The notes under the pieces are model-generated. The model searched no databases, had not been told where the DNA came from, and was given only the letters and a program-made list of their open reading frames with translations. This document shows positions 6,401-61,744 of a DNA stretch of 64,000 bases, one piece after another. Each line of letters begins with the position of its first letter. The stretch's first letter is position 1. Both the position numbers and the translations under genes were made by a program. Origin of the DNA: Hemiscyllium ocellatum (taxonomy: Eukaryota); assembly GCF_020745735.1 (NCBI RefSeq), contig NC_083403.1, forward strand, positions 102,262,378 to 102,326,377. Direction: 5' to 3'.

Positions 6401-9400
6401 ACAGGAATCTCCAAGCATTGGTTAATGAGTTTGTTCTTGATTTGTGAATCCAATTCCATTTGACATGGGTTGATTCTCTGGTTTCCCCCATATCCTTCTT
6501 CCATCAGTTGCCTTTGAGACTTCTGTAGAGCAGTGATGGTTGAGATTAAAGTGCCTGAGTTTACAGCAACAAGGGCAGTTCTTCAATCCAGACAATTGTT
6601 TTGTTGGTAATCCATGAGGGTTCATATATTCAAGGTTCTAAGATTGGGTTTGACTTTGGTTTTCAAACTGCAAGTAGAAGATCCCATTGTATGTGTATTT
6701 TCAGCCAGATTGGTGATTGAACAAATTATTTACAGGGCATCTTTTCTAGCCCCTTCTCTGAACATGGTGAACAAGATAGATCCCCAAAAGGGCTGCTCAA
6801 TCAGGAAGACAGCTGTTGAAAGATTCTCCTGCTCTTATTCGAAGAGCAAAACTAATGAGTCAGACTCCACTGTGTATTGCTGGTACAAAGCTAGGGTCTT
6901 TCAGATGCCACAATTGTCCTCATCACTTTTCATCAATCATACACAAATGTAAGGTGCTCTTTCACATCAAGGATAAGGAGGTCACATTTTCCTTACAAGT
7001 GTTGTGTCTAAATAAGTGCAAGGATAAGAGAATGCAAACACAATTGTTAAAAGTAGCAACAGATTAACAAGGCATTAGGAAAAAACAAATCATGGGGTTG
7101 GTTTTAGAGAGAGAACTGATGAGCAGAGAAGTTTATATGAAAGGTGTATACAACCTTGGTTAGACCACATTTGGAGCATTGTGCACAGTTCTGGTCTCTG
7201 TTATTAAAAGGATAGAGTCGCTGGTTAAGATGCAAAAAAAAAGTTTGACTGTAAAACACCAGAGTTGAGAGGTCATACCCATTTAAAAAAAGTTGAATAG
7301 GCTGGGATTCTCTTGTGACCAGGAGACAGCATATGCCGGAGAGTCAGTTGAAACTTGTGGCGCTGGAAAAGCGCAGAAGGTCAGGCAGCATCCGAGGAGC
7401 AGGAAAATTTGATGTTTCAGGCATAAGTCCTTTATTAGGAATGCAGGAGGGAAGGGGGCTCGTAGGTAAGGGAGTGGGGCTTGGGGCCAAGGTAGCTGGG
7501 AAGGCGATAGGAAGATGGAGGTGGGGAGTGATGGTGATAGCTCGGAGGGGAGGGTGGAGTGGATAGTTGGGAAGGAAGATGGACAGGTAGGACTGTTCAT
7601 GAGGCTTGGGTCTGGGATGAGGACAGATGAGGAAATTGGTAAAATCGACGTTGATGTCGTGTGTTTGGAGGATCCCAAGGCAGAAGATGAGGCATTCTTC
7701 CTCCAGGCATTGGGTGACTTGGATTTGGTGGTGGAGAAGACCCAGGACTTGCATGTCCTTGGCGGAGTGGGAGGGGAAGTTGAAGTGGTCGGCCATGGGG
7801 CAGCGGGGTTGTTTGGTGCATGAATCCCAGAGATGTTCCCTGAAACATTCCTCAAGTTGGCGCCCTGTGTCCCCACTGTAGAGGAGACCATGTCAAGAGC
7901 AACTGACACAGTAAGTGAGAGAGATGTGGATGTGCAGGAAAATCTCTGCCAGATGTGGAAGGATCCTTTTTGGGGCCTTGGATGCAGGCGAAAGGGGAGG
8001 TATGGATGCACGTTTTACATGTCTTGTGACAGCAAGGGAAGGTGCCAGGGGTAGAGGATGCGTTAGCGGGGGGCGTGGGGAGGGAAATATATCTCTGGTG
8101 GTGGGGTCTGATTTTAGGTGGTGGAGATGACAGAGGATGATGCATTGTTTCCAGAGATTAGTGGAATGGAAGGTGATGACCGAGGGAGGGGTTCTATCCT
8201 TGATACAACGCATATCATCCCCCATTTCCGCCTCCTACAATCAGACCCCATCACCAGAGATTTAATTCCCACCCCACCCCTATCGTCATTCCACAGAAAC
8301 CACTCCCTCATTAGGTCCATGCCCCTACTAACTGACCCTCTGCTCCCGGTACCTTCCCTTGCTGCCACAAGAGGTGTAAAACGTGCACCCACACCTACCC
8401 CTCACTTCTGTCCAAGGCCCCAGAGGATCCTTCCACATTCAGCAGAGATTTTCCTGCACATCCAAACATCCTATCTACTTTGTTCTGTTGTCTTGATGTG
8501 GTCTCCTCTACATTGGGATAATATCTCTGGAACACGTGCACCAAACAACTCCATCACTCTGCAGCCAACCACCTCAACTCCCCCTCCTACTCCAAGTCCT
8601 GGGCTGCCTCCACCACCAAATCCAAGCCATCTATGCCTGGAGGAATAAAGCCTCATCTTCTGCATTGGGACCCTTCAACCACAAGGCATCAATGTTGATT
8701 TCACCAATTTCCTTATCTCTCCCTCCCCTATCCCAGGCCCAACTCTCCAACCCGGCACTGCTCTTTTGAACTGTCCTACCTGTCCATCTTCCTTCCCACC
8801 TATCCCCTCCACCCTCCCCTCTGACCTATCACCATCGTCCCCCCACCCAACCTAACCTCCATCTGCATATCACCTTCCCAGCTATCTTCCCCTTCAAGCC
8901 CCCCCCCCCCCCCCCCCCCAAAACATTCCTGATGAAGGGCTTATGCCCAAAACATCAATTCTCCTGTTCCTTGGATGCTGCCTGCCCTTTTGTGCTTTTC
9001 CAGCACCACACTTTTCGACTCGACTTCTCTTCTGTGTGACCTGATAGGTTTTTACAATAATGAAAGGGTTAGACAAGATAGATGTGGAGAAAATATTTTC
9101 ACCTGTAGAGGGATTCTGAAACTAGAAGCCATTAATCCAAATGAGAGTTCAAAGGGAATACCATCCAGGTGTTGGTCTAAGTAGTCTCTTACTTTCTTTC
9201 TGTTCTGGAAATGCTATTATAGATCATTGGAGTGATTTGTTTTAAAATCTGGATATTGTACCTTGGGGAATGAATACAGAGCTTGGAGAGGATACAGAGG
9301 AGATTTACTCGACTCGTATCAAGGTTGAGAGCCTTCATTTTATGCAAAGAATCCGCAGGAACTGGGATTGTTCTTGGAGCAAAAAGGAACACACGGAGAT

Positions 9401-26801: not shown

Positions 26802-27004
26802 TATTTCTCCCCACACTAAGCATCTGGTGGTCCCACACTGTCAATTTCCAATTAGGATTTATAGAAGTTGTTTTTCAACTTTGCCACAGATTTGGAATCT
26901 GATCTGATGAGAGTGTGTTGAAAATCTAGACCTACATTGAATCTAGCTGCAAATGTGTTGCTGGTCAAAGCACAGCAGGTTGGGCAGCATCTCAGGAATA
27001 GAGA

Positions 27005-27040
27005 ATTCGACGTTTCGAGCATAAGCCCTTCATCAGGAAT
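27005..27040 (-). ncRNA. Minimal type I hammerhead ribozyme motif, array copy 1
   Basis: Minus strand AUUC-CUGAUGA-A-GGGC-UUAU-GCUC-GAAA-CGUC/GAAU: intact core, 4-bp helices I and II, palindromic ACGU helix III. Confidence 0.85.
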
Positions 27041-27388
27041 AAGAGAGAGAGAGCCAAGCAGGCTGAGATAAAAGGTAGGGAGGAGGGACTAGGGGGAGGG
27101 GCGATGGAGGTGGGATAGGTGGAAGGAGGTAACGAGTCTGTTTGAGAACGTGGCTGAAGAGCTTCTGTGCAGAGGAGATGACCTGGGGGGTGCAGTGAGA
27201 GAGGGACTCACTGAAATCCTTGTAGAGGGAGGAAGAGAGCTTCTTCAAGGAAGGCATCCTTGTAAGAGGATTCGCAGTAGGTTAAAATCTTCGAGTAAAA
27301 AATGAGGTCTGCAGATGCTGGAGATCACAGCTGCAAATGTGTTGCTGGTCAAAGCACAGCAGGTTGGGCAGCATCTCAGGAATAGAGA

Positions 27389-27424
27389 ATTCGACGTTTC
27401 GAGCATAAGCCCTTCATCAGGAAT
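27389..27424 (-). ncRNA. Hammerhead motif, array copy 2
   Basis: Identical to copy 1. Confidence 0.85.
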
Positions 27425-27772
27425 AAGAGAGAGAGAGCCAAGCAGGCTGAGATAAAAGGTAGGGAGGAGGGACTAGGGGGAGGGGCGATGGAGGTGGGAT
27501 AGGTGGAAGGAGGTAACGAGTCTGTTTGAGAACGTGGCTGAAGAGCTTCTGTGCAGAGGAGATGACCTGGGGGGTGCAGTGAGAGAGGGACTCACTGAAA
27601 TCCTTGTAGAGGGAGGAAGAGAGCTTCTTCAAGGAAGGCATCCTTGTAAGAGGATTCGCAGTAGGTTAAAATCTTCGAGTAAAAAATGAGGTCTGCAGAT
27701 GCTGGAGATCACAGCTGCAAATGTGTTGCTGGTCAAAGCACAGCAGGTTGGGCAGCATCTCAGGAATAGAGA

Positions 27773-27808
27773 ATTCGACGTTTCGAGCATAAGCCCTTCA
27801 TCAGGAAT
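27773..27808 (-). ncRNA. Hammerhead motif, array copy 3
   Basis: Identical to copy 1. Confidence 0.85.
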
Positions 27809-28156
27809 AAGAGAGAGAGAGCCAAGCAGGCTGAGATAAAAGGTAGGGAGGAGGGACTAGGGGGAGGGGCGATGGAGGTGGGATAGGTGGAAGGAGGTAA
27901 CGAGTCTGTTTGAGAACGTGGCTGAAGAGCTTCTGTGCAGAGGAGATGACCTGGGGGGTGCAGTGAGAGAGGGACTCACTGAAATCCTTGTAGAGGGAGG
28001 AAGAGAGCTTCTTCAAGGAAGGCATCCTTGTAAGAGGATTCGCAGTAGGTTAAAATCTTCGAGTAAAAAATGAGGTCTGCAGATGCTGGAGATCACAGCT
28101 GCAAATGTGTTGCTGGTCAAAGCACAGCAGGTTGGGCAGCATCTCAGGAATAGAGA

Positions 28157-28192
28157 ATTCGACGTTTCGAGCATAAGCCCTTCATCAGGAAT
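28157..28192 (-). ncRNA. Hammerhead motif, array copy 4
   Basis: Identical to copy 1. Confidence 0.85.
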
Positions 28193-28540
28193 AAGAGAGA
28201 GAGAGCCAAGCAGGCTGAGATAAAAGGTAGGGAGGAGGGACTAGGGGGAGGGGCGATGGAGGTGGGATAGGTGGAAGGAGGTAACGAGTCTGTTTGAGAA
28301 CGTGGCTGAAGAGCTTCTGTGCAGAGGAGATGACCTGGGGGGTGCAGTGAGAGAGGGACTCACTGAAATCCTTGTAGAGGGAGGAAGAGAGCTTCTTCAA
28401 GGAAGGCATCCTTGTAAGAGGATTCGCAGTAGGTTAAAATCTTCGAGTAAAAAATGAGGTCTGCAGATGCTGGAGATCACAGCTGCAAATGTGTTGCTGG
28501 TCAAAGCACAGCAGGTTGGGCAGCATCTCAGGAATAGAGA

Positions 28541-28576
28541 ATTCGACGTTTCGAGCATAAGCCCTTCATCAGGAAT
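28541..28576 (-). ncRNA. Hammerhead motif, array copy 5
   Basis: Identical to copy 1. Confidence 0.85.
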
Positions 28577-28924
28577 AAGAGAGAGAGAGCCAAGCAGGCT
28601 GAGATAAAAGGTAGGGAGGAGGGACTAGGGGGAGGGGCGATGGAGGTGGGATAGGTGGAAGGAGGTAACGAGTCTGTTTGAGAACGTGGCTGAAGAGCTT
28701 CTGTGCAGAGGAGATGACCTGGGGGGTGCAGTGAGAGAGGGACTCACTGAAATCCTTGTAGAGGGAGGAAGAGAGCTTCTTCAAGGAAGGCATCCTTGTA
28801 AGAGGATTCGCAGTAGGTTAAAATCTTCGAGTAAAAAATGAGGTCTGCAGATGCTGGAGATCACAGCTGCAAATGTGTTGCTGGTCAAAGCACAGCAGGT
28901 TGGGCAGCATCTCAGGAATAGAGA

Positions 28925-28960
28925 ATTCGACATTTCGAGCATAAGCCCTTCATCAGGAAT
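28925..28960 (-). ncRNA. Hammerhead motif, array copy 6 (GAAAUGUC variant)
   Basis: G>A at 28932 changes ACGU to AUGU on the minus strand. Confidence 0.8.
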
Positions 28961-29308
28961 AAGAGAGAGAGAGCCAAGCAGGCTGAGATAAAAGGTAGGG
29001 AGGAGGGACTAGGGGGAGGGGCGATGGAGGTGGGATAGGTGGAAGGAGGTAACGAGTCTGTTTGAGAACGTGGCTGAAGAGCTTCTGTGCAGAGGAGATG
29101 ACCTGGGGGGTGCAGTGAGAGAGGGACTCACTGAAATCCTTGTAGAGGGAGGAAGAGAGCTTCTTCAAGGAAGGCATCCTTGTAAGAGGATTCGCAGTAG
29201 GTTAAAATCTTCGAGTAAAAAATGAGGTCTGCAGATGCTGGAGATCACAGCTGCAAATGTGTTGCTGGTCAAAGCACAGCAGGTTGGGCAGCATCTCAGG
29301 AATAGAGA

Positions 29309-29344
29309 ATTCGACGTTTCGAGCATAAGCCCTTCATCAGGAAT
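29309..29344 (-). ncRNA. Hammerhead motif, array copy 7
   Basis: Identical to copy 1. Confidence 0.85.
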
Positions 29345-31579
29345 AAGAGAGAGAGAGCCAAGCAGGCTGAGATAAAAGGTAGGGAGGAGGGACTAGGGGG
29401 AGGGGCGATGGAGGTGGGATAGTTGAATAATTCAACTGGTAGAAAATCACCCATACCAAGTCTTTAGGTTACAACATTCTCGCCTTTTGAGTCAACATCA
29501 TTGGTTTAAACCCCATTCTAGGAATTAAACACATTATTTACAACTGCTTCATTTATTATAGTGTCTTTAATATAATAAAACATTCCAAAAGCTCTTCCAT
29601 GAACAGTGCAATCTAACAAGTGTGTGACACTGAGCACAAGGAGGAGGCATCTGGACCAGTGACCAAAAAGGTATATTTTATGTCATATCTTAAGCGCATG
29701 AATGAGGTTTAAAAAGGGACCTTCCAAACTTGTGGGGAAGGATGTAGATAACTCAAGATGTAACCACTAATTGATAAGAGTCCAGAGTTGGAGGAACTCT
29801 TTTAAAAAGTTTTGAATATTGTAGTCTTGAAGGATGTCACAAAAATAGGGAGGAGTTTTAATTCAGAGGATAATAATTTTTAAATCAAGGCATTACTGAA
29901 CTGGGAGTGAGAATATGACAGTGGATGCATGTGATTTGGGTATGGGTTAGGATATAGACAAAAGAATCTTTGATAAATTCAGGGTGCAAGATGGCAAACC
30001 CATCAGGACAGCTTTGGAAAAGGCACTCAGAATTGTTCACATTGTCGGAAATGACTTTCTGGGAGCTAGCCATAGAGATGGCCATATTTGACGAAAAGTA
30101 TAGAGAGGTCTCTTGGTGTCCTGGGCTACATCAAAGACCGGTTATTTGTCAGTTGTTACTTAATGCTTATTGACTACCATGTTTGACTGTACAACAATGA
30201 CTGCTCTTCAAAAGCAAGTACTTTGCCATATTCATTTAAACTTATTTTTTGGCATAGTACTACAGCCAGTACTACACCGTGGTCATCCTCCAACCCCTTG
30301 CCCAAATGATATCTGATATGGCACATGGTAACTAATGTGTATCAACTGTGGAGATGCACATTTTGCTGGAGGGTTTGTTGCTGGGGCATTGTCATAAGTT
30401 TACTGATGAACATACAAAGGAAAGATGACCAGCTGGGTAATGGATCCTGTCATATGCCGTCATGGTATAACTGTGCATCACAATCCCTATTTCTGCCCAA
30501 CACTTCGCCAGACAATGTCCAGCAAGGAGCAGAAAATGACAAGGTTAAATAACTGTGCCATCTGTGCAGTCCCATGATATGTGTCATCAGTGACACCACC
30601 AGTTAGTTGTGATGTTTGTCTACTCCCTTACAGAAAAAGGGTGACATAAAATTTAAGTTTTAGAATGATTCAAAGCACCACAATATATTAATGGCTTTTG
30701 ACAATGGTAAAAGAAAAAATCAGAAAGAGGCGATTAATAAAACCCAAAGTGAAAGGAAAGGTACATGCAGAAAAATATAGCCGAAGGAATTATGCCATGT
30801 CACTAGGAAATCCACCATATAATTATTTCAGGAAGCATATCACTGTTCTCTACCATCAAACGTAGCCTTGTGCTGTCCTTTCACTTGCAAGGGAAAGTAT
30901 GTTTGATCAATGTCTCATACTAGACATGAAAAAAAATGTTGGTGGATTGGATGTGGAGGTTGGTAGGTTGAGTAGATGAAGATAAGAGGAAAAGTGAAAG
31001 CAGAAGTATGGAAAATTGTATGAATCTGATTAGGACCACTATTACAATGAGGAGAATACTTATTTGAGGAGAATGTTGGGTTGGAAGTTGAGGCACCTTT
31101 CCTGGAGTTGCAACAAATGTGAAGATTTTAAGAAAGTCACCAAAACTTCCAATATGCCTTTGACTAGTACCCAGGATAAAATCAAACCGCAGTAGGTTCC
31201 TACACTTACAATAGTGTTTTTTGTTGTAACAATCTCCACTTAACAAGAAAAGTAAAACAGGTTTTCTCCTTTATACAAGATCACTGTCAAACCCCTCACC
31301 ACCTAGTGAGCAGGTTTGATGGTAATGTTATTGTTGAACCTGTATGAATAAAATGCTGCATATTCAAAGGGAGACAGTCAGAGCAAGTGAAAGGAGTAGA
31401 GAAATTGAAATGGCCAATGTCACAAATTGAAAGATCTTGAGAAAGTAAGGGGGTGGCAGGAAAGGCCCAGCAAGGGCAAGTAATGGGATCTCCTGTACTG
31501 GGCAAGACCCATAACCAAAGCAATGGGCACAAGGTGAAATCAAGGGAATAGGAACTTCTGTGTCAGTGCAAGCATGAAA

Positions 31580-33930: not shown

Positions 33931-35890
33931 TGTTGTTGATCAGACCAAACCCCGTCAAAGTGTATCAAGGAGATTACTTAGACACAAATTTTTAACTTCT
34001 TTTAAGGCAAGTGTGTTCCAGATGTGATTCAATTGATTCACTGCTAGACTTTAAGCAAAACACAGTTAAAATACAAACGAAAAAAAAAGAAAAATTGGCA
34101 TAACTTTAACTCCATTGAATTAGTTAACAGAATAACATGTTTAAATATTATGCAGCTGTTCCAACATTGCAGCATCTCATAAACACACCCTTGGCAAAGG
34201 CAAATTCAGCAAAATAGATTTTTCTCACATACTATCTTCAGTCCAGGAGAAAGAAACACTGGAAGAAACAGTCAAGCAGCAGATAGAGAACTAGAAGGTT
34301 TTTTTTAGCTGCAGGAGAAGCAAGAACCAAGAGTGTGGTGCTGGAAAAGCACAGCCAGTCAGGCAGCATCCGAGGAGCAGGAAAGTCGACTTTTTGGGCA
34401 AAAGCCCTTCATCAGTAAGAACTGTGTCTATCAGCTTCAAACCCCAACTTCAACTGAATGCAAAACTGAAATCAAACAAATGAAGTCTGAATTGATGAAG
34501 TTAGGCTCACACAGACTTAGGGTTTTAGCTTTACTTTCAGTGAAGTTGGGGTTTAAAGCTGATACATATAGCTCTCTCTTATGCAGCAAAAAAAACTTTG
34601 TGTCCTCTATCTGCTACTAGATTGTTTCTTTGTTAAAATCAAAACCGTGGTCAGCACTACTTTCAACTGTCAAATGCCTTCTGACACTAATCTGTCCACT
34701 GGAATTTTCTGCAGTTCAACTGGCTGATCAGTGGAGCAACTACACTGCTAAAATCCGGTATGAATTTTCAATAAAACCACTCAGTTTCGGAAATTGTAGT
34801 ACTTACCTCTTCGTTGACGGTATAGGAAACTCCCCATTAACCTTTGTTGTCACATCCTATGGGGCCATCTGTCCATGTCTAATGATATGGCTTGTGTAGT
34901 GAATTTCACATATTAACAGCTTTTCTTGCAATTGTTCTGAATCTCTTTATCTCTAAAATTCAAAGATCAACTTGGTCCCGTCTCTTAAAATTTTTAAATT
35001 TTTACACATTCCTCCTGCTACTTATGAGAAAACCTTTCCTATGCAAGTAAATTCTTTAGAGAGATCTGGCACTTTCTTATTCACCAACCCCTGACCAGCC
35101 TGTACATTATTTTGCAACTCTTTTGCTTCAACTGTGATTTCCTTAACCACTTTAACAAAACTCACTGGCTTATCCTGTTTTCCCACATCCATCTTCCCAA
35201 CCTTTTTTTGAACCACCAAAATTGTGACTTCATGTGTCCTTTTTTGCAGTGAAAACACCTAAGGTTTTTTACTTCTCTTCCTCCCCTCATGGGTTTCTTT
35301 TTTAACCCATGGTAAACTATCTTCACTACCTTCAATGAGACCTCCTTTTCCTTTACCACCTGAGGGTTTCCCTTTTCCTCAATTTCGATCCCTCACAGAT
35401 TGAAATTGAGTTTAGAAACCAAAATTTGCTTTCTGAATTAACTCATAATCATCTGCCATTTCCACTGTTAATCTTGCAGTTTTAACTCTCTGCTTTTCTG
35501 ATTACTTGAGTTCTCACTACTTCTGGAAGTGAATTTTTGAATTCCTCCAAAATAACAGTCTCTTTAACGGTCTGATCTATTTTCAATGCCCTTATCCATA
35601 TATTAAAGTTACTGTTTGATCTTTGAAAACTCAATGTACATTTGACTAGGTTCCCTCCTCAGATTTCTAAAACATTGGCTGTAGGTTTATGGTACTAGTT
35701 CATAGTCACCTCATCACACTCTCCAGATACCTCCTCTGGGAGTGACACAAAGACCTCACTCGCTTTACCTACCAATTCTGTTTTGCTGAACAATACCCAC
35801 ATGGTCAGTGGCCATTTCATTTATTTTACCACTTTCGGAAATGAAATGTAAAAGGCTTCTACATCCTGATCATCAAACTTAGGCAATATT
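33931..35890 (-). mobile_element. Gypsy-type LTR retrotransposon remnant (LTR-like block and gag with zinc knuckle)
   Basis: Minus-strand LRCFHCKKGHMKSQFW (degenerate CCHC) and PKFDDQDVEAF at about 35855-35885; LTR-like block similar to 14691-15212; short PLE terminal fragment inserted at 34331-34415. Confidence 0.7.
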
Positions 35891-43900: not shown

Positions 43901-46900
43901 GAGTTTTAGCGAGCACAGGCCGGTTGAGTATAGTCATTATTCTGTCTACATATTAGGAAGTAAAGTGTACGTCATTCTGCTTCTGAAATTCATATAGTAC
44001 ATTGCTCATTTGTGCAGTAGAAAGAATACCTTTTCACTCAATAGGAGTAACCTAGTCACACTGACACTACTAAATTTGTTGATTATAACTGGAGAAGGCC
44101 ATTCAGCTCATCAAACCCACCACACCATTCTTGCTCATGACTGATCATCTCCTCAGTGCCATTTTACTGCACTATCTTCATAGTCTCTTAATGTCATTAC
44201 TCTGCGCAAACCTATCAGTTTCTGTTTTTCTAGTGATTGAGCCCCATCACCCTCTGGGGTAGAGAATCATTCAGCACCTTTTGAGTGAAGAAATTCCTCC
44301 TCATAGTCTTAAATAGCCTCCTGTTTATCCTAAGGTCATGTTACTTGCTTCTACAGTCATCATCCAGGGGAAATATTCTACCCACACTCTGTCAGAATTT
44401 CAAAAGTTTCTTTGAGGTCACTTCTCTTGAAATTCTAGGGAATACAAACCCAGTTTCCTCAATCTCTCAAAATAATCCTGCCATCCCATGGATTAATCTG
44501 GCGAATCTCCATCATATCCCTATTATGGCAAGTATATAATTAGACAGGAGGCTAAATTTCTGCATAATTGTTCCCAAGGCTCAACTGCATAGTAACCATG
44601 TGGATCAACCATCTCAAATTTTAGAAATGCCATACCCTTCCACTGTAATTTGTAGTGAACTGACCTGAAAGTGATGGCCTTAGTGAGTGTGTATGTTGCA
44701 CAGCAAGCAATTATCTAACTCAAATAGCCCTTATCCTACGGGATAATTTAGCTTCCCTGATTTGGCATCACGCTTGGATGATGAGCAAAAGGCTTGAGCC
44801 CTGTTCACCAAGTTGCCGATAATCTTGCAGCTTACCAATAAAGATGCTTGAGGTAAGCAGTTGTGAAGAACGCATTACTGGATTTCTCAACTAATATGTC
44901 AAGAAAGGTGACTTGGTTTGCTGCTCCATTTCAAAGGTGAATTTGAGCCCTTGATGGAACCTATTAAAGTGTAAAAGGAAATTCTTGTATGTACCTGTAG
45001 AGTCAATTATAGCAAATGCATGTCTATACTTAGGTGATATAAGAAGTAAGAAGTTATGGACATTTTTATATCAAAAACCATGATACTGGTGAAAACTGAC
45101 AAAAATGCTGGTGAGAGCTAGGCCAAGAAGAGATCCCATAGCAACAACATTCAGTTGTCCCTAAGTTAAAGCTGAACTCACTGTGTAAATTTAGTCAATA
45201 ACTTCAATTAATACACACTTGGAAAATGATGGGTTGTCTCGGTCACCATAATTTAGTGACGTCGTCCAGATGTCTATGGCTTCCTTGAGCTGTATGTTGG
45301 TGAATAGGTTCATAGTTTGGATTGTTCAATGGACATAGCATTACCATCAGTATGCAGGTTGTTTATAGTCTTTGTGAGGTGAAAGAATCTTTCACTGTAG
45401 TCATGGAAAAGTTATAGCAATTTGCTTAACTAACCAATTCATGTAGAGAGGAGAAAGTGAGGACTGCAGATGCTGGAGATCAGAGCTGAAAATGTGTTGC
45501 TGGAAAATTGCAGCAGGTCAGGCAGCATCCAAAGAGCAGGAGAATCGACGTTTTGGGCATGAGCTCTTCTTCAGGAATGAGGAAAGTGTGTCCAGCAGGC
45601 TAAGATTAAAGGTAGGGAGGAAAATGCAATAGGTGGAAGGAGGTCACAGTGAGGGTGATAGACCGGAGTGGGGGTGGGGGCGGAGAGATCAGGAAGAAGA
45701 TTGCAGGTTAGGAAGGCGGTGCTGAGTTCAAGGGATTTGACTGAGACAAGGTGGGGGGAGGGGAAATGAGGAAACTGGAGAAATCTAGGTTCATCCCTTG
45801 TGTGGTTGGAAGGTTCCTAGGCGGAAGATGAGGCGCTCTTCCTCCAGCTGTCGTGTTGCTATGGTCTGGCGATGGAGGAGTAAATGATGTGTGTAGAGGT
45901 GCAGGTGAATTTGTGGCGGATATGGAAGGATCCCTTGGGGCCTTGGAGGGAAGAAAGGTGGGGGAGGTGTGGGCGCAAATTTTACATTTCAATTTTGCAA
46001 GTTTTGAAATGCAAAACTTGCACCCACACCTCCCCCCTTACTTCCCTCCAAGGCCCCAAGGGATCCTTCCATATCCGCCACAAATTCACCTGCACCTCCA
46101 CATCATTTACTGCATCCGCTGCACCCGAAGTGGCCTCCTCCATATTGGGGAGACAGGCCGCCTACTTGTGGAACGTTTCAGCGAACACCTCCTGGGACAC
46201 CAGGACCAACCAACCCAACCAACTCCCCCTCCCACTCCGCCAAGGACATTCAGGTCCTTGGACTCCTCCATCGCCAGACCATAGCAACATGACAGCTGGA
46301 GGAAGAGCGCCTCATCTTCCGCCTAGTAACCCTCCAACCACAAGGGAGATTTCTCCAGTTTCCTCATTTCCCTTCCCCGCCCCCCGCCCCCCCCCCCCCC
46401 CCCCCCCCCCCAACCTTGTCTCAGTCAAATCCCTCAAACTCAGCACCACCTTCCTAACCTGCAATCTTCTTCCTGACCTCTCCGCCCACTCCGGCCTATC
46501 ACTCTCACCTTGACCTCCTTCCACCTATCGCATTTCCAATGCCCCTCCCCCAAGTCCCTCCTCCCTACCTTTTATCTTAGCCTGCTGGACACACTTTCCT
46601 CATTCCTGAAGAAGGGCTCATGCCCGAAATGCCGATTCTCCTGCTCTTTGGATGCTGCCTGACCTGTGCGCTTTTCCAGCAACACATTTTCAATTCATGT
46701 AGAGAACCAATTATGGCTCAGATAGAGTATAATAGGCCACCATGCATGTCCTTTGGGCAGTACAAACATATGAGCTATGAGGACGAATTGTGATATGCCA
46801 CAAGGCAACTCATTCTTGTTACATAAATGGATCAAACATTTTTTAACTTGCTTTGAGTGGGGTGTGTGCAGTCATACTTAGTGGTGAGTGCAATGGTTGC

Positions 46901-49900: not shown

Positions 49901-52900
49901 CATTGCTGCTGCAATCCATATGCGATTAAGAGGTTGTTCCCTTGTTTCTCATCTAAACAAATGATCAGGATTCGGAAATGCATGTTGATCAAATTTTCAG
50001 CAAATCCTTGTAGAACAGTGAAGGAATTGAGAGAATCTAAACTGTTTGCATGTGAGCAGACCAATGGTAAATGGAATTCAACTTAGTTTACTGTAAGCTT
50101 TATAGGAGAAAGTGAGGACTGCAGATGCTGAAGATCAGAGTCGTGAGTGTGGTGCTGGAAAAGAACAACAGGTCAGGCAGCATCCAAGGACTAGGGGAAT
50201 CGATGTTTCAGGACATGGAGGTCCTGGGCCTCCTTCACCACCGCTCCCTCACCATTAGACGCCTGGGGGAAGAAGGCCTCATCTCCCGCCTTGGAACACT
50301 TCAACCCCAGGGCATCAATGTGGACTTCAACAGTTTGCTCATTTCCCCTTCCCCCACCTCACCCTAGTTCCAAACTTCCAGCTCAGCACTGTCGCCATGA
50401 CTCGTCCGGACTTGTCCTACCTGCCTATCTCCTTTTCTACCTATCTGCTCCACCTTCTCCTCCCTGACCAATCACCTTCATCCCCTCCCCCACTCACCCA
50501 TTGTACTCTATGCTACTTTCTCCCCACCCCCACCCTCCTCTAGCTGATCTCTTCACACTTCAGGTTCTCTGCCTTTATTCCTGATGAAGGGCTTTTGCCC
50601 GAAACGTTGATTTCGCTGCTCCTTGGATGCTGCCTGAACTGCTGTGCTCTTCCAGCACCACTAAACCAGAATATAAAAGCAACAGTTCATGCAACGTTAT
50701 GGTACAGAAGGAGGCCTTTCACCCAATCAGGTCTATGCTGATTCTCTGCAGTGGAGTCCTTTTGGTCTCATCACATTTCTCTGTTCCCATAGCTGCCATA
50801 GTTTATTTCCCTTGGGTTTCTATCGTATGTCCCTTTCAAATCATTGATCATCTATGCTTCCATCATCCTTGTAGGCAGCGTGTTCATGTTGATTATCACT
50901 CACAGCATTAGAAACCTATTCTTCTAATCAGCATGCACCTCTTGCCCAAAGTCTTAAATTGCTGATCCCTGGTCTTTGTTAATTGCTGTTCCTTTATCGA
51001 CCTTATCTAAGTTTATCTCAATCTTGGAAATCTATCAAATCTCTTTTCAATCTCCTTTGCTCTGAGGAGAACAGCCACAACTTCTCTAACCTAACATTGT
51101 TGATAAAATCCCTTGTTCCTGGAACTATTTTGATAAATCTCTGTGGCCTCTCAAGGACCCTCATATCGTTCTGAAATTTGTGGCAATTGGAGCTAGTGCT
51201 CTAGTTGTGGCCTAACTAGAGTTTTATAAAAGATTAAGCATGACTGCTCTACTTCTCAACCTTTATTTATGAAGCCCAAGATTCCACACCTAAATCCTTG
51301 AACTATGACCTGCCATCTTGAAACATTTATGTGCTGGAACCCAGGTCAGAGAGAGGAGAGATTAATGCTATGTTCTTGGCATATATCTCATGTATTCACT
51401 AGAATTTAGACAAATAGGAACAAAAAGGTGAATTGAATGCTGGACTGATATGACAACATAAACCCAAGACTATCAATGCTGACAACATATTCTGCTGTAG
51501 TTAGTGTTCAATTCTAATTACTGGACCACAAGGATAAACCTGATTTCTAAAAGTCGTGCATATCAGAAAAATGAGAGTAATCGCTACTATGAGATCTAAG
51601 TTGTAAAGTAGATTAGATCTTCAATTTGGGAAATGAGTTGCAAGAAAGTTGATAAAGCTATTGATTTCCATTGAAGATTGATATACATGGTCAAATGGCC
51701 TGTCTCGCATGCGTTGTAGCTCTTTATGTATTATTTTTGTAATAGCTCAAATTAAAATACACAAACCACATTTTTTGTAGGAAGCTGAGGAGCCCTGATA
51801 CTGTAAAGTTCATTTAAAAAAAAGTGGAAATTTGGAAATGTATTCATCACCTAGAGATGATACAAACTGAATAGTTGGATCATTGTTGGAAGGGCAAATT
51901 CCCTTTTTTAAAAAATCATTCGAGGGAATCTTGTTTATTATTGATTGTGTCTTAATATGTAAACATTTTGTGTTTCTTAAATTTCTAGAAATGCTTTCTT
52001 GGATCAATTTATAAAATCACTCGTGACATGAAACATTTACTGTTTTTGGATTAAATGTCTGCTTCAATTCACTTCATTTATTTCTAGGACATGGTAGTTC
52101 GAGCTCTCAAGCAGACCAACAGTCGCAGTATAGAGGCTGCAATTGAATACATCAGTAAGATGAGCTATCAGGATACACGGCGAGAACAGATGGTTGCTGC
52201 AGCTGCAAGACCAGTGAATGCAAGTGTGAAAACATCAGGTATATGTTGCTATAATATTATGTCACTTTTAGCTCTTTCAGTGCTAAGATATATGTCATGC
52301 CTCTGTCCTTGGTTTCTTTCTTATTGTGGTAGCAGCATCTTTTAACATATCCAATTTTTGGCAGTTTTATGGGGACACAATTTATGTTTGCATTTACGCC
52401 ACTTGATTAAATATTTTTCTTTGTGTTATTATAATGTTTACTTGATGATTCGACTGCTTTGGGTTTCAGCAGTGCCTTTGACGTTTATTATTCTGTGGTA
52501 TTGAAGCAGAGCAGTTCACTTTCATACTTGGTCCTGTGAATTTGTATAGATCAGGTTGGCATCAGCCATCTTGTGAGAAGCTCAGTTTGTCTTGTACAGT
52601 ATTTTGAAATACAGCATTAACATTAGTCAACTTGGCTTTGGTGTTTTTAATGTATTTGTACTTGACTGGACCCTTGTCTACAAGATTCAGACCAACTAGT
52701 TAGAAATAATGTTCACTTGTTTTCTCTATAAGAGTGGGACTGAATGTGCAAAATATCGAAATGTATATTGACTGATTGTGATCTAAAATGATTCAATCCA
52801 GCACTTGAACATAAACGTGTTCTACTGTTGTGAAATCTTTATTCACCTTCCCACTTTGGCGTGTGTCATATGCATTTATATTAATGAAACCCTGCTAGGT

Positions 52901-55900
52901 TTGGGTAGGTCTAAGCATATAGGAAATTGTGATGGTCAATCCTTTCTTAATGTGCAACAAATGTACATCCTGTATTGGAACAAAGTTTGTTTATCTGAAG
53001 GTGGTGGAGCCATGCTGTAGATCATTCAGATGTTGTGGAGAGGGTTTGCAGGTATAACTGTTTAACAAGATAAATTTCATATTTAGTCCAGTTTACTTCA
53101 CTTCAGCAATCTGTTTTAAGAAGATATTTATTTCAGAATATATTTTTAAATACATCTATTGGGCTGGCTGACTAATTTTTTTTTTAATCAGGACATTAAG
53201 TAGTGAAATTGGTTAGCACAATTGCATTACCTGGTTTAATTGTTTCAATTTTACCTCCTGTTTGAAGGCTTCCCCATTGCCTGTACCTCTGGTAGCTCAG
53301 TACAAAAACTGTATGCTGTTAAGTTCAAAGTCTGTTTCCTGTTGTGCGCACAGCCGCCATACTAAACTGCTGGTGATCAGTATATTGGGTGGAGTTAGGA
53401 ATGTTGATTTTGCAGAGAATGGTTTGATGATCGGTAAACAGAACGTAATGCCATGAGTGAGCCATTATGCTGTTTTGTTGATTTTGTATTTTAATTCATT
53501 CTAACAGTCCTAGTTCTGCAACCTGAGTATGTTTGGCTATCAATCATGGCTATCAGTCCTACTTTTGAAATTTCAAATAATCTGCTCTGTATTTCCAATG
53601 AATATTTCCAGCATTTGCAGTTTTAAAACTTAATTCACATCTAAAATTTAAAAATCACACAACACCAGGTTATAGTCCAACAGGTTTATTTGGAAGGAGA
53701 AAGTGAGGACTGCAGATGCAGGAGGTCAGGGTTGAGTGTGTGTTGCTGGAAAAGCACTGTAGGTCAGGCACTATCTGAGGAGCAGAAGAATCAAAATTTT
53801 GGGCATAAGCCCTTCATCAGGTTTATTTGGAAGTACAAGCTTTTAAAGCGCTACTCCTTAGGTAGCTAGTGGGGCAGGATCATCGGAGCATCCATGGAGA
53901 GAAAACAAGTTAACGTTTCGAGTTGAGATAACTTTTCATCAGAGGTGAAGAGAAATGTGGATGTGGCAGTATTTACACAATTATAGGGGGAGGGTGCATT
54001 ATTAGAGGGGTTAGACTGCTGAGGATGAAATGATCTTGATAGTTCAGATTTTGAAGTGATTGGAATGTGAGAATGGCAGATCAATAGTGCCAGACTAGGA
54101 AGAACAGACAGTCCCACTGGAGTGGGAGAGGGAGAGAAGGTGACAGAGAATGTAACAAGCAAAGGTAAAAGAAAGGGAGGCAATAGATTCACAATTTGAA
54201 GGTGTTTATCTCAATATTGAGCCCAATAGGTTGTAAACTGTCTAGTTTGAAGATGAGATGTTGCACCTCTAGTTTGCGCTGTGATTCACTGGAGCATTGC
54301 AGCATGCAGAGGATAGACAAGTGGGCGTGTGAGTAAGACACTGTTAAAATAACTGGCTATGTAAAAATTTTGGGTCATGCTTGCACGCGCACTTGGAGGT
54401 GTTCTGCAAAGTGGTCACCCATTCTGCGTTTTGTTTCTCCAATGTACAGTAGGCCACATTGGGTGCTGCAAATACAATACACAAGATTGGAGGATGTACA
54501 GGTGAAATGCTGTTTCGCTTGGAAAGATTGTTAAGGGCTTTGGATGGTGAGCAGGGAGGAGATGAAAGGGGCAGGTGTTGCACCTTCTGCAGTTCCATGG
54601 GAAGGAGGTTGGTGTTGGTGGTTGAGGAATGGATTAGGGTGTCCTGGACAAATTTGGATGTGGAATTTCGCAGTGAAGGATTTTAACGTCAGTAGTAGGG
54701 CATGGAAATTGGGTATAGTCTCGGCCAGAAATGGAGGAATGCAGAGATTTTGAGGATTGCACAATTGAAAATTGTGTAAATGGGAAAAGTGAGGCCATGG
54801 AACGATTTAAATCAAACATGAAATATTCCAGATACATAGTTTTAGATAGTGTCACTGGATTGCCTGAATTTAATATTTTCCAGTTACGAAGCTCCATGGT
54901 ACAATCTATTGAAAATTAAATATGAGAAATGTGTTACCATATCGTGAAGTTAACCGAGAGTTTAATATAGGAAGATCAATAATATGTACATTTGTAGTAC
55001 ACCACAAAATGTAATGTACTCTAACAAAACTATATCTTGTTTGTGTCGCTGATATTATTTTATACTAGTATCATTTTATTTTTCTCATCTTCCTGAACAG
55101 CACCCAGCACGGTTCAGCAAACAATTAACCGGAGGCCAAGCTGGAAGGGCTCAAAAGAATCTTTAGCTGCACAACGACATGGTCCATCGTTGATGGATGG
55201 CGTGGGATATCGAGCAGACAGCCCGGTCTCCCAGATAGAAATGGGTCGGCCATTGTCATCAAGTTCAGGAATGACTACATATACACAGAGTCATCCAGGT
55301 AATGGACAAGTGCCTTTGGGAGCAGTGAACACTCAGAGAGCGAACCCTCAACCACCACTCCCAGTGAGGAGTGTAACTCCTCCACCACCTCCACCCAGAG
55401 GACAGACTCCACCCCCACGTGGCACCACTCCTCCCCCACCCTCTTGGGAGGGGAGCCAGCAGCCAAAACGGTTCTCTGGCAATATGGAATACATGATTAC
55501 ACGAATATCTCCTGTGCCGCAAGCAGCCTGGCAGGATGGGTTCCCACCAGCCAACCTGAATGCTGCCTCTATGATGAATCCACAGCCCCAAGGCCAAAGA
55601 GGAATTAGTCCTATTCCACTCGGTAGGCAACCTATTATCATGCAAAATGCCGCTTGTAACAAATACAACTACTCAGCAGGCCGAACAGGCCACCAGAATG
55701 GATCAGCACCACCTGATGGATCTATAGGTGGACACTTTGTGCCACACACAACTGTTATGGGAGGAAGCGCGGTGAGTCGTCAGCCACCTCCATACCCTCA
55801 CACTCAGTCTAGCAGACTAAGCCCCAGTGCCCTCCAAATGCAAGCTGGTGGGGCTGCTGCTACCACTTACAATAGTAACTTGAATGGAAGCGTGTCACAG

Positions 55901-58900
55901 TCTGTCATGGTGTCAAACCGAAACAGCCAGAACATGGATCTTTATAACATCGGTGCACCTACAATTACATCTTCATGGCCACAGCCACCTCCACCTCAGC
56001 CCCAGTCTTCAGGTGGTGGGCAGGAGATGGCTAACTGGCATCCTTCTCAAAATCTGAATGCACCTGTACGGTCCAATTCCTTCAACAATCACCTTCTGTC
56101 CAGCCGGCAGCCTCATTCCAACTCTCAGCCATCTGTCACCACGGTGACTGCCATTACACCTGCCCCCATTCTACAGCCTGTGAAGAGCATCCGTGTACAG
56201 AAACCTGAGCTTCAGACAGCGCTTGCGCCTACTCACCCTCCCTGGATGCAGCAAACAGGACCTGTTCCCGAGTGTTCCACTCTCACTGAAGCTCCGAGTT
56301 ATCAGCCTCCACCTCCACCATATCCCAAGCATTTGCTTCAGCAAAACCAGTCTGCTTCACTGTATGATTCTGTAGCCAAGGTCAACAAAGATGAGCACCC
56401 AGCAAAACAGGTGGCTCAGAATGCTGAAGAGGATGAGCATGATAAGGCTACCGAGTATGGGGAACGGTTTGATGCTACAGAGAAGGAAAAAAAACTAATT
56501 ACAACATCACCTGTCCCAGTGCGAAAAAACAAAAAGGATGAGGAACGCAGAGAGTCACGAATTCAGATATACTCCTCACAAGCCTTCAAATTCTTCATGG
56601 AGCAGCATGTGGAGAATGTGCTCAAGTCTCATCAGCAGAGGTTGCATCGCAAAAAACAGCTGGAGAATGAAATGTCAAGGGTAAGCTTCTCTCTGTAAGG
56701 CACTTCATCTGCATCAAGCATTCTTCAGTTAGGCCTGACCTATTTCTTTTGTTTGCCATTGTTATAAGCAACTGTGAAGATAGAAATGATGAGACTGGTC
56801 ACATTTTCACACTTTTCCTTCTTGCTTTCTATGAAGCATGCCTCTAGTTAAAACATATTGTTGGCAGGTAAATAGTTTCAGGCCTGAAAAGCTGATTCGG
56901 GCAGACTGTTGCAACTTACCCTTGAAATTTATCATCACCTAAAGAAAATTGTCTAATTATCTTCTGTGACATGAGCCTACCAACTAGCAAAGACTAGTGG
57001 CTCCATTTTTGTGCCCTTTTCACGGTGCCAGTACTTCCTTTGTGGTTTCTATTTTCATATTTGCTTAGTTTCAAGCACCTGTAAGGTTTCTTCCCAATGG
57101 TATTTCTAATGATATTTTGTGCTTACATTCTCTATTAGTGTTGCTTAAAGAAAATTGGAATACTGTATTTGCTAACAATGACATTCTCCTAAAATCTGTC
57201 CTGGCTCCTTTTACCCATCCTATTTCAATCCCTGTTCGCAAATGTCCATTTTGTGATGCTGTTCTCTCATGGTTTAATGCTATTTGATACTATATTTCCT
57301 CTAGTAGTTGCTCCTGTATCCTTTTGATCCCCAAAATACTTTGAGTTGCATCCTTTGTCCACTCCTCAGAGATGTCTTTGCGTGTGGCATCCACCGCTTC
57401 TCTACACATCACTGTTGACACTTTCATCAACTATCTATCTCATACAAAAATGTAGATTAGTCCAGTTCAATAGCATTAAATTCAGAGTAGCCATCTGAGC
57501 TCTCACCAACTTCTTGAGCTCTGCAAGCACCATTCCAAATGTGGTTGATGGGTCTGGCAACTATTTACAGTTGTCATCATTCAATCTTGTCACTTTATCC
57601 ACATACCTATAACTATAAAAATCAACTACAACTCTAAAGCACTCCCTGCAGGGTTGTTGGAAGTGGATTTAATTATTACATTGGAAAGGGAATTGAATAT
57701 ATATTTGAGAAAAGACAAGTTTGTCGGGCTGCATAGAAAGTGTAAGGAGTGAGACAAATTTAAGATTTCTTCAAACAGCTACAGCAGACCTGATGGCCCG
57801 ATATGCCTACTTTGCTGTAAAATTCTCTTTTAACTCCATTCTGTTTTGGCAGTAATGGATGAATTTTTTTTTAGCAGATGTGTCCTGTAGCTGGGATCAT
57901 CTTGCTTATTTCTTGGAGTTGCAGTGTTGTGTGGAGGATGTATATTGGTGAATAAAAGTTGATCTTGTAGTTTGTCATTTTTCCACACTACCTGTTCCAA
58001 AGGTTGTACCTTCAGACCTTGCAGGTTGTACATGTTGGTGTTTCATTCTTCTTCATTCTTCTTTGTATGGAGCCGCAGGACATCGGGGAGATACTACACA
58101 AGTGTTTTGCATCAGTATTTACTGTGGAAAAGGACATGGAAGATATAGAATGTAGGGAAATAGATGGTGACATCTTGAAAAATGTCCATATTACAAAGGG
58201 GGAAGTGCTGGCTGTCTTGTAATGCATAAAAGTGGATAAATCCCCTGATCAGGTGTACCTTAGAACTCTGTGGGAAGCTTGGGAAGTGATTATTGGGCCT
58301 CTTACTATCGATAGTCACAGGTGAGGTGCCAGAAGACTGGAAATTGGCTAACGTGGTGCCACTGTTTAAGAAAGGTGGTAAGGACAAGCCAGGGAACTAT
58401 AGACCAGTGAGCCTGACATCGGTGATGGGCCAGTTATTGGAGGGAATCTTGAGGGACAGGATGACATACATTTGGAAAGGCAAGGACTGATTCGGGATAG
58501 TCAACATGGCTTTGTGTGTGGGAAATCATGTCTCACAAACTTGATTGAGTTTTTTGCAGAAGTAACAAAGGATCGATGAGGGCAGAGCAGTTGACATGAT
58601 TTTTATGGATTTCAGTAAGGCGTTCAACAAGGTTCCCCACGGGATACTGGTGAGCAAGATTAGATCTCATGGAATACTGGGAGAACTAGCCATTTGGATA
58701 CAGAACTGGCTGAAAGGTAGAAGACAGAGGGTAGTAATGGAGGGCTATTTTTCAGACTGAAGGTCTTGACCAGTGGAGTGCCACAAGGATCAGTGCTGCG
58801 TCACTACTTTTCATCATTTATGTAAATGATTTAGATAGAAGCATAAGAGGTTAGTCAGTTTGCAGATGACACCAAAATTGGACGTGTAGTGGACAGCGAA

Positions 58901-60735: not shown

Positions 60736-61744
60736 GTAAGTAATATTTACTAACACCATTGGTATGGGAATTTTACTGTACACAACTATTATTAGTTGCT
60801 CTGTTCAACCATTAATTTATTGCGATTAGATAATTGAGACAACAGTCTCGCACTGTCACAGCCATTGGAAGTAGTTTCAGGTGGGTTTTCTGCATTCCTG
60901 TAGATGACCAATTCCTTGAGGAGTGGGTACTTTGTTGGATTGGGCCACTTGTGTCTGTAAACCCAGTTTCACATAAAGGATAATTGGAGGGGTGTTCCAA
61001 GGATGTAGTTGGAGGACTGGAAAGGGATATAGTGAAGAGAAATCCAAATGTTTCCCTGCCTCTAAATACAGTATTTTGCTAGGTCTTTCAAGTGCTTGAG
61101 TTTAACATTGTCTGTATTCATCTAACCAAGAAAGGCAAGTGTGCCAAACGCCACCTTCACTGCCCTATCTAACTGTGATGCTAATTTCACGGAACTACGT
61201 ACCTGTATCACTTAGTTTCTCTGTTTGACAATACTCTCTTGGGCCTTGCCATTAACTGTATAAGTCCTGTCCCTGTTCACCTTCCCTCACTTAAGTTGGG
61301 AATAATTGGTAAATTATTAAAGTTTGCACATTATACATCAGTATAAAAGAAGACATCCTAAATGAAAACTGTATTTTAAAGTACTTCGTAAGTATGTTTT
61401 ATTTTATGTAGACTGGTAGGTCATAGCCAAACCAGCTGCGTTTTATGGTGACAGAAAATGCAATGAAATCTCTCCCGCTCCACCTTGACACTCTCACATT
61501 AATACTGGCTCCTTCCTCCCCACAATACGTACCCATCTTCCCAACTACATCCCTACTACATACATCCTCTCTCCACTCAATCCCTGCTCACTTGTCCCTT
61601 TCATCCTACTCCCACTCAAGGCTCATCATTCCCTCAACCCTTCCTCCTTGCCTATGCTCTTCACTCCTGGATTTCTCCGTGTTTACACTCTAGAGTGGAG
61701 AAACAATGCTAACCTGGAAGGATAATAGACTAAAGCTTCAAAAC

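Follow-up and report, generated by a model that had tools for sequence, protein, structure and literature searches.

How did a short sequence carrying a hammerhead ribozyme come to lie in several almost identical tandem copies at one place in a shark genome, and by what machinery could it have been inserted there? The locus that raises this question lies in a stretch of 64,000 nucleotides from Hemiscyllium ocellatum (contig NC_083403.1, positions 102,262,378 to 102,326,377 of the forward strand), called the window below. Its minus strand holds an array of 384-bp repeats that an earlier note on the same DNA had presented as a candidate retrozyme, i.e., a tandem repeat whose transcript would cut itself into monomers able to form circles. 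The analysis reported here leads, with a probability of about 0.75, to the view that the array is a young, non-coding and non-autonomous derivative of a Penelope-like element (PLE), a mini-PLE, or a 'non-LTR (long terminal repeat) retrozyme' if that term is used as broadly as by Li et al. 2026.

The tandem array and its units

Tandem Repeats Finder (TRF) describes the array at 26945-29422 (minus strand) with a period of 384, 6.5 copies, 99% matches and 0 indels, and finds no other tandem array in the 64-kb window. The copy number is 6.45 head-to-tail units: read on the minus strand, the array runs from position 275 of its first, partial unit (29422) to position 64 of its last (26945). Units are numbered from 1 to 384, position 1 being the G at 27392 (the 5' end of the predicted cleavage product) and position 384 the C17 at 27009. 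With the unit as blastn query, the window yields six complete copies of 99.7-100% identity and an incomplete one at either end. The sole difference among the six full units, according to the per-unit comparison, is C381T, a CpG transition in unit 29312-28929. The count of about 6.45 near-identical units made in the earlier note is therefore confirmed by both programs, with one substitution. The array and the parts of its unit are as follows.

26945-29422, minus strand: the whole array (TRF, blastn and per-unit comparison)
27009-27392, minus strand: reference unit, the last full one (blastn and per-unit comparison)
27393-27776, 27777-28160, 28161-28544, 28545-28928 and 28929-29312, minus strand: the remaining full units (blastn)
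29313-29422 (5') and 26945-27008 (3'), minus strand: the partial units (blastn)
27309-27379 in the reference unit, minus strand: stem-loop present once per unit, positions 14-84 (RNAfold of unit segments)
27293-27328, minus strand: 'tail' segment, positions 65-100 (MAFFT of dispersed copies against the unit)
27131-27292, minus strand: internal 162-nt segment, positions 101-262 (blastn and protein searches)
27041-27130, minus strand: C-rich segment, positions 263-352 (blastn and alignment)

The longest open reading frame (ORF) within the unit has 74 amino acids and gave no homologue in a homologue search, which included no separate Pfam search; exact-protein look-ups of three unit ORFs found nothing on record. 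There are no runs of N in the window, and the flanks of the array are unique, matching nothing else in it. Two Rfam matches adjoin the array, mir-506 at 29537-29617 (minus strand, E=4.6) and RgsA at 29723-29833 (minus strand, E=4); both are far below the gathering score and were taken as chance.

The hammerhead motif

27009-27040, and again each 384 nt up to 29313-29344, minus strand: minimal hammerhead (pattern search, register comparison and the definition of minimal hammerheads in PMC4209133)
28929-28956, minus strand: single variant ribozyme copy, C15.2 to T (TGTC for CGTC), GAAATGTC (pattern search and per-unit comparison)

The minus-strand motif CTGATGA-A-GGGC-TTAT-GCTC-GAAA-CG-TC was found at 7 places, six of them exact, and a search for the core with up to 2 mismatches gave 11 matches in the window against 0.12 expected from shuffles. 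As repeats of a single sequence, the seven ribozymes amount to one observation and not to seven. The predicted cuts fall at 27009/27008, 27393/27392, 27777/27776, 28161/28160, 28545/28544, 28929/28928 and 29313/29312. These positions, and the presence of seven motifs, agree with the earlier note, which had also claimed a complete core in every unit; this last point does not hold for the variant copy, in which the C15.2 to T change breaks the ACGU palindrome required for a dimeric helix III. The conserved core (C3 U4 G5 A6 N7 G8 A9, G12 A13 A14, A15.1-U16.1 and H17) is present in the other copies (6/7).

Helix I is made of 4 bp, ATTC (27040-27037) pairing with GAAT (27008-27005); it is open, and loop 1 is undefined. 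Helix II (GGGC/GCTC, with one G-U pair and the loop TTAT) is preceded by an unpaired A. From GAA to C17, only A15.1-C15.2-G16.2-U16.1 (ACGU) is found, which leaves room neither for a loop 3 nor for a stable helix III. The Rfam hammerhead models gave no match on the array, neither at the gathering score nor at E<=10. The description of the motif as a type I hammerhead is therefore right as regards its core and its open helix I, and has to be corrected insofar as it suggests the canonical form.

Minimal hammerhead ribozymes (min-HHRs) were defined for metazoan PLEs by Cervera and de la Pena in 2014 (PMC4209133), with a helix I of 4-5 bp. They were also described by Lunse, Weinberg and Breaker (cited in PMC6765202). 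The catalytic boxes, the unpaired nucleotide between A9 and G10.1, the G10.1-C11.1 pair, the palindromic 15.2/16.2 positions, the lack of loop 3 and the 4-bp helix I identify the predicted ribozyme of the array as such a minimal PLE hammerhead, and not as a canonical type I motif. The extra A between A9 and G10.1 is shared by the array and all six dispersed copies compared in register (see next section), and the G10.1-C11.1 pair stands at the base of a helix II that reads GGGC/GCTC in the array and GGGC/GCCC in most dispersed copies. No compensatory pairs were found in helices I and II among these copies, which show only one-sided changes and mismatches due to decay.

Min-HHRs were predicted to be active only as dimers, the palindromes of two copies building helix III (PMC4209133), and their cleavage in vitro is poor, in dimers and trimers too (PMC4209133; review PMC6765202). 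The ACGU of the array is self-complementary, the dimeric helix III having been assessed by a duplex estimate only. For the isolated ribozyme, helix I and helix II together give -5.9 kcal/mol, against -8.7 kcal/mol for the competing minimum free energy structure. The hammerheads of neighbouring units could probably act only in pairs, through the ACGU palindrome, and would probably need the help of a PLE protein. Their cleavage would release 384-nt monomers; it would probably be inefficient and perhaps dispensable for mobility.

Homology to Penelope-like elements

The main evidence on the origin of the unit comes from the window itself. According to blastn, positions 263-384 followed by 1-100 form a continuous block of about 220 bp, spanning the ribozyme, that recurs outside the array. 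Seven dispersed copies, with 75-91% identity, lie at 8925-9013 (+), 34421-34334 (-), 45621-45448 (-), 46513-46692 (+), 50194-50109 (-), 50563-50661 (+) and 53821-53700 (-). An eighth lies near 7372-7470 (-). For example, positions 263-380 of the unit are 85.6% identical to 46513-46629. Several dispersed copies stand directly 3' of broken ORFs with a typical PLE C-terminus or GIY-YIG domain, and the C-rich segment (263-352) is homologous to the last ~95 nt of the PLE 3' untranslated region (UTR), upstream of the ribozyme. In the MAFFT alignment, the 3' ends of the dispersed copies are of two classes, at about positions 58-64 and about 98-100, i.e., 36-40 nt apart: the copies at 8925, 34421, 46513 and 50563 belong to the short class and those at 45621, 50194 and 53821 to the long one. 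The PLE remnants that bear these ends are listed below.

45448-46692, both strands: head-to-head decayed PLE 3' fragments; the minus strand has an ORF remnant at 45992-45708 followed by a ribozyme-bearing tail of the long form at 45621-45448, the plus strand a GIY-YIG remnant at 45853-46284 followed by a tail of the short form at 46513-46692 (Pfam, ORF translations, inverted repeats 80-95% complementary, blastn)
7344-9013, both strands: second head-to-head pair, with a C-terminal ORF remnant (7344-7796, minus strand) and a ribozyme-bearing tail (8925-9013, plus strand)
50109-50661, both strands: third inverted pair, with a long-form tail (50194-50109, minus strand), a PLE C-terminal remnant (50125-50367, plus strand) and a short-form tail (50563-50661, plus strand)
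34334-34421, minus strand: solitary PLE tail of the short form, its ribozyme decayed by G12 to A (pattern search, blastn and alignment)
53700-53821, minus strand: solitary long-form PLE tail with a decayed ribozyme (blastn and alignment)

The Pfam match of the GIY-YIG remnant at 45853-46284 is weak (E=5.7e-4, under the curated cut-off). Further evidence was obtained with the PLE C-terminal remnant at 7347-7796 (minus strand), used as phmmer query against 1.84 billion representative proteins. This search returned 21 relatives; the ten that were looked up are all from elasmobranchs (Rhincodon typus, Leucoraja erinacea and Rhinoraja longicauda). One of them (P0007) carries RVT_1, then a weak GIY-YIG match (E=0.008, under the cut-off) and then the same tail, which is the domain order of PLEs. 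No full-length elasmobranch PLE was recovered among the phmmer relatives, which comprise only fragments and chimeric gene models. The homology to ends lying 3' of PLE/GIY-YIG remnants, joined to these elasmobranch relatives of the PLE tail, identifies the ribozyme-bearing part of the unit as a PLE pseudo-LTR end. The link with PLEs made in the earlier note is hence strengthened by some 220 bp of homology, and the shark setting that it proposed agrees with the named relatives, which are from whale shark and skates.

The other part of the unit has another status. Positions 101-262 have no further copy in the window according to blastn and no homologue in the protein searches. No autonomous PLE ORF, with reverse transcriptase (RT) and GIY-YIG endonuclease, was found inside or adjoining the array, and only decayed remnants were found elsewhere in the window. 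A 24-mer of the internal segment had 0 matches in metagenomes, and prokaryote genomes and viral contigs likewise yielded 0. A family-level 22-mer matched 5 metagenome loci (L001-L005), none of which (0/5) has a hammerhead motif; they were taken as chance and rejected as relatives, the two that were read (L002 and L004) resembling ordinary coding sequence.

Some features of the dispersed copies and their relatives deserve a separate mention. The copy at 50581-50608 (plus strand) has an intact minimal hammerhead core, with a helix II closed by GCCC and a GTT cleavage triplet; the six remaining dispersed cores that were examined carry changes expected to disable them, mostly at CpG. In the long-form copies 45530-45448, 50185-50109 and 53790-53700 (all minus strand), a reading frame is open through the tail (3/3). 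In two of the three it begins at an ATG located 18 nt past the cleavage site (MLPDLL...SPHFLL), and the third has ATA. This suggests that the PLE ORF may start just downstream of the ribozyme cut. In positions 19-100 of the array unit, this frame is interrupted by a 1-nt insertion (TTTGACCAGC vs TTT-TCCAGC), as one would expect of a derivative that does not code for protein.

The three inverted pairs, with repeats spanning 7346-9020, 45514-46666 and 50149-50661, are made of 5'-truncated PLE 3' fragments, with arms 75-95% complementary and, for the best pair, a centre gap of only 11-45 nt. To judge from these pairs, head-to-head pairing seems to be a layout in which the PLE family repeatedly inserts, rather than the result of independent insertions; an inverted arrangement was noted for min-HHRs too (PMC4209133). 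Two skate gene models, a neuromedin-U receptor model and a DUF4518 protein (P0008 and P0015), end in the PLE C-terminal/GIY-YIG tail. In both, gene prediction has probably taken in a PLE fragment as terminal exon and so produced a chimera.

Ends of the array and insertion site

The 3' end of the array lies exactly at position 64, as in the short class of dispersed copies, whereas the internal units continue through the tail and past it. The tail (65-100) is present at the long-form PLE ends and in each internal unit, and is missing after the last unit of the array. According to RNAfold, this region contains a stem-loop with an 11-bp stem, positions 14-24 pairing with 73-84, and an AC-rich loop that holds the short end site (~58-64); the sequences of both stem arms are also found in long-form dispersed copies. 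The 36-40 nt between the two end classes match the optional PLE tail of 30-40 bp, which was traced by Frangieh et al. 2024 (PMC11167929) to two internal RT start sites, located at an AC-rich stem-loop shortly downstream of the hammerhead. At its other end, position 275, the array resembles an ordinary 5' truncation.

Comparison of the flanks revealed a candidate target-site duplication.

29423-29428, minus strand: 5' copy of the candidate duplication, ATTCAA (flank comparison)
26937-26944, minus strand: an extra AG (26944-26943), then the 3' copy of the candidate duplication, ATTCAA (26942-26937) (flank comparison)

An equally long word at matching offsets is found in 55 of 5000 random site pairs (~1.1%). 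The candidate duplication contains ATT, the motif preferred by the endonuclease of the Anolis PLE (PMC11167929). One other origin of the unit was considered and rejected, namely that the 162-nt segment is a host flank caught in a local duplication, as sole explanation: the outer ends of the array are of PLE type, and the internal junctions cross both RT start sites unbroken.

Age of the array

The full units differ by one substitution in about 2.3 kb. Both CpGs of the core are kept in 6/7 array ribozymes. Among the seven aligned dispersed cores, a CpG is lost in five (c8925, c34388, c45547, c46513 and c53821) by changes of CG to CA or TG, including G12 to A; the core c7372 is decayed and c50581 alone is intact. 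The observed/expected ratio of CpG is 0.40 in the unit vs 0.27 in the window. The near identity of the units and the retained CpGs show that the insertion, or the last expansion, is very recent and that the array is much younger than the surrounding PLE debris.

Proposed mechanism and alternative explanations

The unit would combine the functional end of a PLE pseudo-LTR (~95 nt of 3' UTR, min-HHR, stem-loop and 36-nt tail) with the 162-nt segment. The RT/GIY-YIG endonuclease of an autonomous PLE would bind a minus-strand RNA, linear multimer or circle, that exceeded one unit in length, and the endonuclease would nick an ATT-containing target. Target-primed reverse transcription would then start inside the RNA, in the AC-rich loop at position 64, a start proposed from the coincidence of end points only. 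Copying back across several units, with a stop at position 275, would leave the 5'-truncated partial unit and a short target duplication. In this scheme, the homology to PLE ends, the min-HHR features, the near identity of the units and the agreement of the 3' end with the short class are shown, whereas the type of template (linear multimer or circle), a single multimeric insertion as against later growth in place and the activity of the ribozyme are the parts that we infer; a circular RNA and its rolling-circle copying are possible.

Several points weigh against this proposal. The mobility of the 384-bp element would rest on one locus in a 64-kb window, where the 162-nt internal segment shows no link to any PLE. 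The candidate duplication is short (6 bp) and has a 2-nt offset at the 3' junction. An unequal crossing-over after insertion, from ~1.5 to 6.45 units, would be indistinguishable from a single multimeric insertion. The activity of the ribozyme is a prediction, and helix II of the array has a G-U pair where the family consensus is G-C. The fold of the unit RNA shows no exceptional structure (z = -0.52). Lastly, the unit has a GC content of 50.5%, a little more than is quoted for retrozymes (<45-50%); this is a descriptive trait and not a mechanistic one.

The explanation closest to the earlier note is that the transcript cleaves itself efficiently into 384-nt monomers, which are ligated into circles from which rolling-circle reverse transcription made the array. 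The identical tandem units, their non-integer number, the complete hammerhead core and a palindrome that permits a dimer all suit this explanation, and it follows the general model proposed for PLEs (PMC4209133) and for retrozymes (PMC7229834). However, the non-integer copy number, which had been taken as a sign of a circle, is unspecific, since internal initiation of the PLE type explains the 3' end on a linear multimer too and such a template accounts for the end points equally well. Many retrozyme circles are reported to pair strongly with themselves, which the unit RNA does not. As for self-processing into circularising monomers, its efficiency is made doubtful by the very low activity of the min-HHR class, dimers included (PMC4209133), and by the Anolis PLE, whose cleavage depends on the protein and is dispensable for insertion, unprocessed RNA being the main substrate (PMC11167929). 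Efficient self-cleavage followed by circle copying is consequently considered unlikely.

It can also be proposed that one insertion, made of a pseudo-LTR, the 162 nt and a second pseudo-LTR, was expanded in situ by unequal crossing-over or slippage, the hammerhead being a passenger of a local satellite. A route from PLE ends to tandem repeats has been put forward (bioRxiv 10.64898/2026.07.22.740005), and both the lack of a second copy of the internal 162 nt in the window and the single locus from which the array is known point the same way. A founding insertion of PLE type would still be required by the outer ends. Furthermore, stepwise growth usually leaves more than one difference in 2.3 kb, although a recent expansion or homogenisation would not. 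Growth in place is considered somewhat unlikely. An inflation of a single unit or a dimer to 6.45 copies during assembly is extremely improbable: perfect repeats do assemble with difficulty, but one unit carries a private substitution, the flanks are clean and unique, and there are no N runs.

Comparison with described systems

The mini-PLE proposed here can be compared to four described systems. It resembles the min-HHRs of metazoan PLEs (PMC4209133) by the type I topology, the full core and the location at the 3' end of a PLE, as well as by the many dispersed, variable and often inverted copies in a genome. It differs from them by helix II, which has 4 bp with a G-U in the array vs 6-8 bp in the min-HHRs of Schistosoma and Drosophila, and by the spacing of the motifs, 384 nt vs ~3 kb, the coding region being absent from the array.

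Like metazoan non-LTR retrozymes, the array is composed of non-coding tandem units in the range of 150-450 bp, each with one type I hammerhead, in the company of PLEs, and its copy number is in the usual range (75% of families have <=7 units). Cervera and de la Pena 2020 (PMC7229834) defined retrozymes on canonical type I motifs and assigned the minimal ones to PLEs/Terminons, whereas Li, Clavereau and Pollet 2026 (bioRxiv 10.64898/2026.07.22.740005) counted tandem repeats whether their type I hammerheads were canonical or minimal, and related retrozymes to PLE pseudo-LTRs. In the retrozymes of 2020 the hammerhead is canonical, its helix III being short and its loops in contact, and both linear and circular RNAs have been demonstrated; the array has the minimal variant and is known from its sequence alone. 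It does contain at least 2 consecutive units of ~150-450 bp with a complete type I hammerhead, which makes a retrozyme if minimal motifs count, as under the 2026 criteria. Where retrozymes have flanking target-site duplications, these are expected to exceed 4 bp; the ATTCAA of the array is a candidate of 6 bp. The array would work like a retrozyme, without being a textbook member by the 2020 standard, and ranks as an 'active retrozyme' by the 2026 criteria. The remark in the earlier note that no described elasmobranch example was known to its author is weakened by this recent survey, where the only chondrichthyan genome included has repeats of this kind, their consensus length averaging 363 bp.

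The Poseidon PLE of Anolis carolinensis (PAc), reconstituted in vitro (PMC11167929), shares with the array a hammerhead at the pseudo-LTR/ORF junction, ATT in the target, and two alternative 3' ends 30-40 nt apart, at an AC-rich stem-loop some tens of nt past the cut. In contrast to the array, for which only sequence is at hand, it is autonomous and encodes RT and endonuclease. Distances differ as well, the RT starts of PAc lying 111-118 nt into the ORF and its cut site 26 nt after the start codon. Its cleavage needs the PLE protein, and no RNA-seq reads begin or end at the cut site (PMC11167929).

The retrozymes of the newt satellite 2 and of the axolotl are also tandem repeats from vertebrates (~330-350 bp), with a hammerhead that its weak helix III keeps from acting alone and that works as a double hammerhead between adjacent units. 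They are distinguished from the array by a helix III of 1-2 bp with a loop, by loop 1/loop 2 contacts, by their 10^4-10^5 copies and by proven circular RNA.

Genomic setting

On the plus strand, the window also contains exons of a serine/threonine kinase gene of the NDR/LATS family, at 52091-52345, 55190-56698 and 60159-60743. They are respectively a UBA-like N-terminal exon, an exon of 502 amino acids that is rich in proline, contains the motif PPPYP and has no Pfam match, and the kinase-domain exon (Pkinase, 6e-41; best solved relatives Cbk1 and STK38). We take the gene to be LATS-like from recognition of its motifs; for its large exon, an exact-protein look-up returned no entry. Relative to the first exon (52091), the array is placed some 23-25 kb upstream and on the opposite strand.

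Significance

The array adds an example to a kind of element already described; it is not the first of its class in cartilaginous fishes, raises no new question and overturns no current view. For annotation, the array and its at least 8 dispersed look-alikes in 64 kb belong to a PLE family and not to a new class of ribozyme, and the same PLE reading is advised for the hammerhead-like matches that are abundant in elasmobranch genomes. The coding part of the PLE has been wholly replaced by 162 nt, the ribozyme, the stem-loop of the RT start and the tail being retained. This makes the array a convenient natural minimal substrate for work on recognition by the PLE enzyme, on min-HHR cleavage in vivo and on linear vs circular templates.

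The youth of the array suggests that the PLE machinery was recently active in the lineage. A bolder proposal, distinctly doubtful at this stage, is that of a currently active elasmobranch mini-PLE whose unit would be the minimal RNA needed in cis by the PLE RT/endonuclease, i.e., ~95 nt of 3' UTR, the min-HHR, the AC-rich stem-loop, the tail and ~160 nt downstream, and whose paired min-HHRs would release circularised 384-nt RNAs in vivo. If true, such an active mini-PLE would be the first natural case from a vertebrate in which PLE-type minimal hammerheads are tied to circular RNA.

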